Assembly: GCA_038496445.1 (NCBI GenBank)
Contig: JALMLS010000489.1
Span: forward strand, 1 to 64,000
From: Trichosphaerium sp. ATCC 40318
Lineage: Eukaryota; Protista; Tubulinea
Direction: 5' to 3'
Length of the DNA: 64,000 bases
The position numbers and the translations under genes are program-made. This document shows, in pieces, positions 49,983 to 53,761 of this stretch (its first letter is position 1; every line of letters starts with the position of its first letter). The notes beneath the pieces were generated by a model. That model had not been told where the DNA came from, searched no databases, and saw only the letters and a program-made list of their open reading frames with translations.

Positions 49983-50401
49983 TTGTAAACAATAAAGTCT
50001 GTTCAAAAGATTGGTCATCTTAGTTTGATTCTTAGCTGCATCAGGTGCTTGAAAGTATATCAAAAGCAAAGAAAACTGTTTGTCTATGAACTTTGACACC
50101 TAATTATCACATGTAGACTTGCAAAGAAATACACACTATTGTTGACCAAACTCAGGTTGAGTTCTTTCTTTAGCGTTTAAACTCCCACAAGTGTCAGCGT
50201 GCATTCTTATAGAGGCGTTTGGCTATGGGTGGTCAGGCTGGCACTTGCTGAATTATTACGTTTATTTTCGAGTAGATTATTTGAGTGAAGAGCGTTTGTT
50301 CACGCGAAATACTTGATCAATCAAATTCTGTTCAGAAAATTCAGCTTCTGCTAACAACCACGGATCACAAATTTTCAAACAACATTTGATAACCCAACGC
50401 A

Positions 50402-51558
50402 ATGGCACAGCCATTCGTGGTTCCGAATAAATGCTCTACGGCAAGGAAAGACTACAGCGAAGAGAGATTAAAGATGTTTAATACCCTATCTATCGATGGG
50501 ATAAAGGTAAAAGCTAAAATCAACCCCCGTGCCAAACTACTTCTTCGCTCATTGTTGTTTACAGGGCGTTTTTGATAAACAAGGGTATTGGGAAAAAATG
50601 AAAGAAACAAATAGCAATCTACTACCAACATATGAAAATATGGACCATCCTAAAGTGAAAGTAGGCGACGAAGCGCCAGGAGGTCGAGGTACGTCACGTG
50701 ACTTCACGTTTTTTTGAATTTTTGAGATTACTCAATTTTGTCCTTAGTGTTTGACCTGAATGGTAAAGAACTAGACTTTAAGAAGCTTATTGCGCGTGAT
50801 AAACCTGTCGTTCTCAACTTTGGAAGTTACACGTGGTCAGTACTTAATTCTCCTTGGGTTTTTTTGAAGTTTTTTTATTTTGGGTTTTCAGATTAGTTCT
50901 TACTATTTTACAGACCCCCATTCCGCCTGCATCTTGTTGCAGTATCAGATATAGTAGCGAAATACGCTGCTAAGGTAATTAGAAAGGTCACCTGTTAGAT
51001 ATTTATTATTAACACAGAAATAATAGGTAGATTATCTGGTAGTGTACATTGTGGAGGCACACTCAACTGATGAGTGGCACGTGACAACTAACGATAACGA
51101 TGGCGTATGTTACCTTCAACCAAAGACTTTGGAAGCCCGTATGGATATTACCAAGGTAATAATTTATTCCTAATTTTAGCACTTGTTTCTTTTGCAAAGA
51201 AACGCAATTATGATGATTGTAGTTGTGGATTTACTTCATATAAAACTACCTGGCTAATGGTTTTGAAGGATATGATTAACGAACTATCACTAAAAGATGA
51301 TGTTGTTGTTGATTGCATAGAGAACGAAACAGACGAAGCTTGGGAAGCCAAACCAGAGGTACAGTCAGAATAATCGCGACTTCTTTAACAAAGTTTCAGA
51401 GACTTTATGTTGTTGATAAGGGAATGATAGCATACCAAAGTGGTATTGGACCTTTCGGGTTAGTACTTTTGTTGAACTAAAAAAGAAATTCTAACTGTTT
51501 TACTTCAAGGTACAACATCGAAGAGCTTGAAGAGTTTTTGAAACAAAAATACTCATAA
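50402..51558 (+). CDS. iodothyronine deiodinase-like selenoprotein
   Basis: Motifs VKVGDEAP, KPVVLNFGSYT-U-PPF (UGA = TG 50834-50835 + A 50914), VVYIVEAHSTDEW, VVVDCIEN, PERLYVV and GIGPFGY. Confidence 0.93.
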
Positions 51559-51596
51559 AGAAAGAACCTACTTTCTTTTTTACATAGAAAACACAT

Positions 51597-51688
51597 TGAT
51601 GTCGTTGTTGTAATGGTGAATTGCTCTTCGTTAAACCCTCAAAACAGGGATGAAGAGTGATGAAAAATAAAACACAACATTGACGTCA
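51597..51688 (+). promoter_or_regulatory. type II SECIS element
   Basis: GUGAA core at 51616-51620. 11-bp helix UUGCUCUUCGU/AUGAAGAGUGA, unpaired AAA at 51633-51635, CCCU/AGGG mini-stem and UGAA at 51661-51664. Lower helix gaugucguuguugu/acaacauugacguc. Confidence 0.92.
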
Positions 51689-53761
51689 CGTTGAAACTGT
51701 CTCATTCTGCTTCTCTTTAGCAAAACACTTGTGATTACGCAGTGTTGGTATTTTACCACATAGACATTGCGTTTTCGATTGTCAAGTACATAAGCACCAC
51801 TTTGGGAAATAAAAAATTTTTCGGTTTTAGCCATTTTTACTTGTATTGACAACTCAGTGGTAACAATGAGCAAGCAATATGGAATCGCGTTATTGATATG
51901 TTGTCTTTGTATGTCACTATCAAGTACGTAAAAACTGCTTCAAAACAATTAAAAAACCGCCACATTCTTAAAAAAACTCACAAGCGCTCGCCCAAAACGT
52001 TGAAGGGCTTCCAAAGTCTCTAGAGGTTAAAAGTAACCTCAAGTACTCTTTTATCCTTGAAGATGATCCATCGAAGGCCTGCAAGTACATGGAAGAGCCT
52101 TGTGCAGATCTAAGCGATATTTGGTAAGATAGATCTTTTTGTACAATTTTCCATATTCGACATCACGTGACTTGTTTTCTAACTCAAAAAACAAAGGGGT
52201 TACGATTTTGAAGAGGATGGTGTCACTCATTACTTTGCTATTGTTGGTGTGACTAACGGTGTTGATATTGTAGATGTGACAAACCCAACTGAACCAAAAC
52301 GAGTCAAGTTTTTGAAAGGATGTATTAACATGTGGAGAGATATGAAAGAGTGCGTATTGTGTTTATTACCGACGTATTCAATGACGAAACTGGTCGTTGG
52401 TTAACGGTGTGATGTAGTTATGGCACTACTATCTATGGTATTTCTGAGTACACACAGACATGCGCATGTCCTGAAGGTAACGTTAGCTGCGTTACAATTG
52501 CTGACGTATTTTACCAAGGCACACCTTGTTTGGAACACATGGAAATTACTTCACCACCTGAAGTTGCAGGAACATACCAAATGACTGAAGGAAGACAAAC
52601 ACCTCAACTTGAAAGAGTTGGTCCTATCGTACGCAAAATATGTCTCATTTTTTTTGGTGCTAATTTGATTGTAAAGAATGGCAAACTCGTATCCGCTGAA
52701 CCACGTGATGACAAAGCATGTGATTTTATTTCGAATGGTGTTGAGCTTTTAGGAAATATCGCTATTATTGATGCTGGTGATTGCGGTTACGCAATTAAGA
52801 TACTCAATGCCCAAAACGCTGGTAGCGCTCATTATATTAGTCTGCTTTAGGTAGCAGATCTTCTAACGATTTCTGCTCCAGGTGCTATTGCTGTTGTCAT
52901 ACATAACGATAAAGATGATATTATCTACCCAGGTATGGGTGGTTGGATAGTGTACCATGAAAATATAACCATCCCAGGTACACGCATTAATTCCAGGTCA
53001 ATGATTCTAACATATTTTTTCTTGTCAACAGCCGTTATGATTGGTTTAGATGATGGTGACTTACTCCGTCAATATGATGGCGTAGAAATTGTTCTTGATG
53101 CTAGCAACAGAAACTTTTCTGATTTATTTGCTCCTCCTGAAGGCACGTGATATTTACAAAGCTATAGAGCGTGAAGATATGAACTAACTTTTTTGTTTAA
53201 AAGGAATTACAATTATCGACATGTCCGATCCTTGGGACCCAAAGATCAATCAAACGTTTACAGATCAATTTATGCATTCTCACAATGTCTATGTTGAAGA
53301 AGATAGACCTTTTATGTATGCTAATGCCTTTATCGTTAACATACACCTGATTAACATAACTTCTTTTTTTAAGGTATGTTTGTGGTACTTCAAATGGAAT
53401 GTACAAAGAAGTGCAGAATCATGGAATTACGTGGCAAACGGCGGATTGGTCATTTATGATGTCAAAAGTATGATTCCACAATATCTTACAGAGTGGAATG
53501 AGACATACATACACGATATGATGGTATGTAAAAGACGGAAAAATTATATAAGGTGGCTTACACAAAAAGGTAAAAAAATGTGGTGAGGTGTACTATCTCT
53601 ATGGTGCTGCCATATCAGATGACGACATTTATGTCTGGGATGTGACAGATCCACTTAATATGGTCCAAGTTCTGCGCTTCCGAGGTACAGTTTAGCACGT
53701 GCACACTTTTCTGTAATTTAGCATAGCGTATTTGAATTTCTGCTTTTTAACCGTTTTTATC

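Follow-up and report, generated by a model that had tools for sequence, protein, structure and literature searches.

The 64,000-nucleotide stretch of Trichosphaerium sp. ATCC 40318 DNA analyzed here (the window, on contig JALMLS010000489.1) contains a gene that very probably belongs among the deiodinase-family (PF00837) selenoproteins. A first-pass annotation had made the same assignment from the letters, and it is sustained by the PF00837 match of exon 5, by the alignment of that exon to Dio3, by its matches in the ESM Atlas and by in-frame TGA codons in paralogues. In the reading that we hold with high confidence, this is a functional gene of eight exons for a soluble, predicted thioredoxin-fold protein of the iodothyronine deiodinase family, 234 residues long, with selenocysteine (Sec) at position 106. 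The codon for that residue would be put together from two exons by splicing, and a SECIS-like hairpin lies beyond the stop codon.

Gene model

Translation of positions 50100-52100 in three frames yields an eight-exon gene on the + strand, spanning 50402-51558 (Table 1). The joined exons form a frame of 705 nt (234 codons and a TAA), and the sole internal stop in the joined frame is the TGA at codon 106. All seven introns have GT..AG borders, and their lengths range from 41 to 113 nt. An in-frame TAA lies 12 nt 5' of the ATG, and the paralogue on contig C490, whose start is also Met-Ala, aligns there with exon 1. No transmembrane segment or hydrophobic membrane anchor was found when the 234-residue product of the joined exons was scanned, and the protein has no extra domain.

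Table 1. Features of the gene and its 3' hairpin in the window, followed by related loci in the assembly. Positions without a handle are those of the window; a slash within a sequence marks an exon border.
Feature	Position	Strand	Remarks
Exon 1	50402..50506	+	ATG, 35 codons, phase 0; donor aag/GTAAAA
Exon 2	50565..50688	+	124 nt, phase 1 at end; frame continuity; 50% aa identity to C490/C151
Exon 3	50748..50835	+	Ends NFGSYT + TG (50834-35, Sec codon bases 1-2); 64% identity to C490/C151
Intron 3	50836..50913	+	78 nt, GTCAGT...ACAG; divides Sec codon TG/A
Exon 4	50914..50974	+	Opens with A (UGA base 3, codon 106), then PPFRLH
Exon 5	51027..51155	+	Deiodinase signature YIVEAHSTDEW; 79% identity to C490/C151
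Exon 6	51269..51358	+	70% identity to C490/C151; weak collinear matches in C3, C54 paralogues
Exon 7	51400..51458	+	RLYVVDKG...GPF; collinear matches in C490, C151, C3, C35, C54, C1
Exon 8 and stop	51510..51558	+	TAA at 51556-58
SECIS-like hairpin	51597-51688	+	Type II; GUGA core, 58 nt past stop; 444 nt past UGA in mRNA
Helix I	51597-611 with 51674-688		14 bp
SECIS core	GUGA 51616-19 with GA 51662-63		In internal loop
Helix II	51620-31 with 51650-61		12 bp
AAA bulge	51633-35
Mini-stem	51636-39 with 51646-49		4 bp; apical loop 6 nt
T4_deiodinase locus	C16:255054		Pfam scan
T4_deiodinase locus	C54:69259-69887		Pfam scan
T4_deiodinase locus	C54:226453-226790		Pfam scan
T4_deiodinase locus	C54:92937		Pfam scan
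T4_deiodinase locus	C1:456587-457110		Pfam scan
T4_deiodinase locus	C35:113117-113647		Pfam scan
T4_deiodinase locus	C3:180648-181235		Pfam scan
T4_deiodinase locus	C44:116871		Pfam scan
T4_deiodinase locus	C26:403629		Pfam scan
T4_deiodinase locus	C4:235531		Pfam scan
T4_deiodinase locus	C21:195614-196143		Pfam scan
T4_deiodinase locus	C176:71762		Pfam scan
T4_deiodinase locus	C268:36448-36751		Pfam scan
T4_deiodinase locus	C490:6390-7007		Pfam scan
T4_deiodinase locus	C151:149770		Pfam scan
GUGA-core element	L019:3431-3503
GUGA-core element	L021:2973-3044	-
GUGA-core element	L022:3166-3235
GUGA-core element	L023:3218-3294
GUGA-core element	L030:2734-2805	-
GUGA-core element	51604-51675		Window gene

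Relationship to known deiodinases

Single exons of the gene were used as queries against Pfam, the PDB and the ESM Atlas. Exon 5 alone scores 22.7 bits with PF00837 (E 6.7e-5), or 21.9 bits when the genome was scanned, against a Pfam cut-off of 27; the remaining exons lack the length for a score. Collinear exon matches link the gene to paralogues that pass this cut-off. Clusters named T4_deiodinase account for 21 of the 30 nearest named feature matches of exon 5 in the ESM Atlas, with AhpC-TSA clusters among its lower-ranked neighbours. In the PDB, Dio3 and Dio2 are sequence matches of exon 5 only; exons 3 and 4 have no match in that search, and the match of exon 6, to a repeat protein, was set aside as spurious. 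Exon 5 aligns to mouse Dio3 (4tr3_A) over VDFLIIYIEEAHPSDGW. The structures are 4TR3/4TR4 for Dio3 and 9H48 for Dio2.

The active-site motif of the family, FGSxT-U/C-PxF, appears after splicing as NFGSYT-TGA-PPF, and the motif at the edge of the insertion, YIxEAHxxDGW, is represented by YIVEAHSTDEW, which aligns to YIEEAHPSDGW of Dio3. The proton relay of deiodinases is formed by Ser, Thr, Tyr, Glu and His, with a stacking Trp (PMC11592359), and these relay residues and the Trp are all present in the GSYTU and YIVEAHSTDEW stretches of the predicted protein. A second relay His (His219 in Dio3, His182 in Dio2) is apparently not conserved, as judged from one pairwise alignment. Deiodinases have been described as containing a peroxiredoxin-like module (PMC11592359), but both the signature and the Pfam match of this gene are those of a deiodinase, not of the peroxiredoxin (AhpC-TSA) family.

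The resemblance to vertebrate DIO1-3 extends to a near-identical active-site stretch (VLNFGSYTUPPF, beside the vertebrate SCTU form), the YIxEAHxxDxW signature, a Sec encoded by UGA and a SECIS in the 3' untranslated region. However, the protein lacks the N-terminal membrane anchor of the vertebrate enzymes and has Tyr for Cys before Thr-Sec, a replacement pointed out in the first-pass annotation and plainly visible in the motif. The gene also differs from those of vertebrates in having a GUGA SECIS core and a Sec codon split by an intron.

The homologue in Dictyostelium to which that annotation referred is a published one: in D. discoideum, Lobanov et al. (2007, PMC2375036) described a deiodinase-like selenoprotein whose SECIS is of type II and has an AAA bulge; its gene is the one deiodinase-like gene among five selenoproteins (PMC2375036). 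The likeness, taken from the published description, includes the UGUA that precedes the SECIS core region in Dictyostelium (PMC2375036) and has a counterpart at 51609-12 in the window.

The divided selenocysteine codon

Exon 3 ends in AGT TAC ACG TG (to 50835) and exon 4 begins with A CCC CCA TTC (from 50914). As modelled, the junction 50835/50914 would join TG and A into UGA and give NFGSYT-TGA-PPF. In the unspliced frame, codon 106 reads TGG and a TAG stop follows at 50894-96. Use of an alternative acceptor, the AG at 50890-91, would keep the TGA while adding 22 nt and shifting the frame. The first-pass annotation had described all of this, from the division of the codon by the 78-nt intron to the fate of the unspliced RNA and the frameshift at the upstream AG, and each of these points agrees with the sequence.

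Support for the junction 50835/50914 comes from comparison. The same split (TG/gt...ag/A) is found in two close paralogues, on contigs C490 and C151. Taking the two in that order, the junctions are ACC TG/GTATTA...TTAG/A CCA CCA, with an intron of 84 nt, and ACC TG/GTACTG...TCAG/A CCA CCA, with an intron of 87 nt; exon 4 of both opens with A CCA CCA TTT. Any phase-2 intron splits a codon, and a codon divided in this way is to be expected occasionally in an intron-rich genome. Comparison of the three genes indicates that the intron position dividing the codon was inherited and does not serve as a regulatory device. No evidence of regulated or alternative splice use at the Sec codon emerged from the comparisons among the gene and its C490 and C151 paralogues. 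The earlier proposal that splice choice directly gates Sec is thus true only trivially, as the split is inherited in three paralogues and no alternative use of it is seen. A literature search on intron-split Sec codons returned nothing relevant.

The in-frame UGA occupies the position that is homologous to Sec in relatives, and conserved coding sequence continues downstream of it. At the homologous site the in-frame TGA is contiguous in paralogues on six contigs (C54, C1, C35, C3, C44 and C26) and stands in the motifs xFG(S/N)YT-U-PPW or LGSHT-U-PPM. Between the window gene and its C490 paralogue, pN is 0.20 and pS 0.76 over exons 4-8, and the exons 3' of the TGA are on this measure under purifying selection. 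Since synonymous sites are saturated but pN remains low past the TGA, translation must continue beyond the UGA.

The SECIS-like element

The hairpin 3' of the gene has the full set of SECIS features, namely helix I, an (A/G)UGA...GA core, a helix II of about 12 bp, an unpaired AA(A), and an apical loop with mini-stem. The AAA bulge is followed by a 4-bp mini-stem, and the element is therefore of type II, as the first-pass annotation had proposed when it placed such an element about 60 nt after the stop; the GUGA of the core lies at 58 nt. This core differs from the canonical AUGA. The fold energy of 51597-51688 is -32.9 kcal/mol (z -4.1), and none of 200 shuffled sequences folds as well.

An energy-based SECIS scan was too noisy, and a strict helix-count scan was chosen. 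Its structural criteria were a TGA...GA motif, 8 or more helix II pairs, a correctly spaced AA and a stable helix I. It returns five candidates on both strands of the window (128 kb), and only the element at 51597-51688 has 13 helix II pairs. In 40 dinucleotide shuffles of the window (5.1 Mb), one candidate is as good as this element, which is beyond chance.

Elements of the same architecture occur 40-80 nt past the stop in eleven paralogues, with a spacing of 12-13 nt between UGA and AAA; counting that of the window gene, 6 of the 12 elements in the family have a GUGA core (Table 1). Helix II, assigned manually and verified by counting pairs, covaries across the paralogues, with pairing in 71% of cells as compared with 34-48% in slid controls; none of 500 shuffles reaches the observed value. 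RNAalifold predicted no structure from the SECIS alignment (A3).

Sequence models are less discriminating. A covariance model derived from the paralogue elements alone (R1) places the window element at the top of the 128 kb, at 51604-51675, but its score of 20.7 bits (E 0.13) is barely over the 19.3 and 18.8 bits of background hits. This model leans on primary sequence that is absent from the window element, and for that reason it separates the element only weakly from background. Among the Rfam models, SECIS_1 does not match the window element, and SECIS_5 gives it 20.3 bits (gathering score 50). Even at a lax threshold, Rfam detects none of the paralogue SECIS elements, so the weak library scores of the window element say little.

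The deiodinase-like family and the selenocysteine machinery

When the whole 70-Mb assembly is scanned with the PF00837 profile, about 15 deiodinase-like loci appear (Table 1), most of them with an in-frame TGA. The gene had been treated as a singleton in the first-pass annotation, and this view must be abandoned. Because Dictyostelium has a single gene of this kind, the family is a large expansion for a protist. At least four subfamilies can be distinguished, characterized by NFGSYTUPPF, by xFG[SN]YTUPPW, by LGSHTUPPM and by other motifs. The in-genome paralogues (C490, C151; C54, C1, C35, C3; C44, C26, C4; C16, C21, C176, C268) resemble the window gene in family, Sec position and SECIS architecture. 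The C490 and C151 paralogues share all eight exons with it, at 50-79% amino acid identity, and have all seven intron positions in common with it, including the one in the split codon. In contrast, the TGA of the other subfamilies is contiguous and lies in SYTUPPW, NYTUPPW or SHTUPPM motifs, where the window gene has a split TGA and SYTUPPF.

The C490 and C151 paralogues (L029, C490:3500-10000, and L031, C151:147000-152232) are 98.8-100% identical in their exons and are located near contig ends. The pair may have arisen by a very recent duplication, or one locus may have been assembled twice. A tRNA gene (L029 13-83, - strand; 52.6 bits) is present beside the C490 paralogue, and weak matches to the tRNA-Sec model occur beside the two paralogues, at C490:3418-3503 and C151:140081-146896. 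In a further copy, on C54 (90000-96000, minus strand; L032), the His of the signature is replaced (LEARASDGW), helix II of the SECIS is incomplete through loss on its 5' side, and the R1 score is 27.4 bits, compared with 42-66 bits for others. Judged from these changes, this copy is probably decaying.

The presence of Sec machinery in the genome had been named beforehand as a check on the assignment, and several components are found. A tRNA-Sec gene on C5 scores 61.7 bits, over the gathering score (Infernal, RF01852), and has the anticodon UCA, long acceptor and D stems and a run of T after the gene; ARAGORN called no tRNA at this locus. Five collinear exons match SepSecS above the cut-off, and at C102:9912-11031 a selD-like gene matches in three exons, again collinear. 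The last matched stretch of this selD/SPS-like gene contains a TGA, and it may be that the gene itself encodes a selenoprotein (SPS2-like). A search of the genome for eEFSec with TIGR00475, a bacterial selB profile, matched only general translation GTPases.

Alternative readings

The window copy has a GYNGYN-type tandem donor, AC/GTG/GTCAGT (50833-50838), which is not shared by C490 or C151. Its upstream GT, at 50833-34, lies 3 nt 5' of the modelled donor, and with the same acceptor it would be workable, as AC and A would form ACA (Thr) and the frame would be kept with the Sec codon lost. Were this the main or a regulated site, the locus would produce a Sec-less protein with SYT-PPF, or switch between two forms. 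The modelled donor, GTCAGT, does match weakly at +3, where its C is unusual (found in one of the 14 donors that the window gene and its C490 paralogue have together). However, G stands at -1 in all 14 of those donors, a pattern that TG/GT fits and AC/GT, with its C, does not. The upstream GT is, moreover, missing from both paralogues, since their Thr codon is ACC (ACC TG/GT). Its use would also remove the catalytic residue, which is encoded by TGA in every family member, and would leave the SECIS pointless, yet the SECIS is retained. Predominant or regulated use of this donor is accordingly very improbable in our estimate. There is an equally slight chance that splicing at the tandem donor toggles by 3 nt between a Sec enzyme and an isoform that lacks Sec but keeps the frame, for instance with selenium supply; if true, this would make the choice of splice site a real switch for selenoprotein synthesis.

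The two other readings concern the UGA itself. It could be a plain stop that leaves a 105-residue fragment, or the locus could be a pseudogene, with the 3' hairpin fortuitous. The weak scores with the covariance and Rfam SECIS models would suit a decaying copy, and at least one family member, in the C54:92937 region, looks degenerate. Against this stand the frame, which is intact across eight exons with a single TGA, the strong purifying selection past that TGA indicated by pN and pS, and a hairpin exceptional enough that 5.1 Mb of shuffled sequence contains just one comparable candidate; we consider a stop or a pseudogene highly improbable. UGA is reassigned in some protists, and the codon might be read as Cys or Trp, by near-cognate suppression or under a reassigned code, instead of as Sec. 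However, reading frames of the paralogues end in TGA, so the code is standard and TGA not reassigned. The genome also has a tRNA-Sec with the anticodon UCA and SepSecS, and a SECIS-like element lies 3' of the window gene and of its paralogues. A reading as Cys or Trp is the least credible of the three and can be given hardly any weight.

Proposed mechanism and significance

For the preferred reading, that of a Sec-containing enzyme, a sequence of steps can be proposed. Splicing of intron 3 at 50835/50914 would form the UGA from TG and A, and the SECIS would recruit a SECIS-binding protein and the Sec-specific elongation factor, allowing Sec-tRNA to decode the UGA. The nucleophile would be the selenolate of Sec106, presumably assisted by conserved residues (Ser, Thr, Tyr, Glu, His and Trp) that correspond to the mammalian proton relay and the edge of loop D. 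The enzyme could carry out reductive dehalogenation or a redox reaction like that of peroxiredoxins, after which a thiol would reduce the oxidised selenium; Cys154 or Cys185 may be the resolving residue. A role as dehalogenase or redox enzyme is a fair inference. Thyroid hormones are not known from such organisms, and the substrate of the enzyme therefore probably differs from the vertebrate one.

The deiodinase family, the recoding of UGA through a SECIS and the occurrence of such genes in amoebae are already known, and the gene described here is very probably a genuine and fairly ordinary addition to a family that is large in this genome. What it provides is a correctly modelled member of a large set of deiodinase-like selenoproteins, at a locus where automatic annotation will almost certainly fail. 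As the Sec codon is missing from the genomic DNA, even gene finders that allow for TGA and search for it in frame will overlook the gene. With three paralogues that keep the split and others that have a contiguous TGA, the family offers a clean comparative case that is useful for testing selenoprotein-prediction tools.
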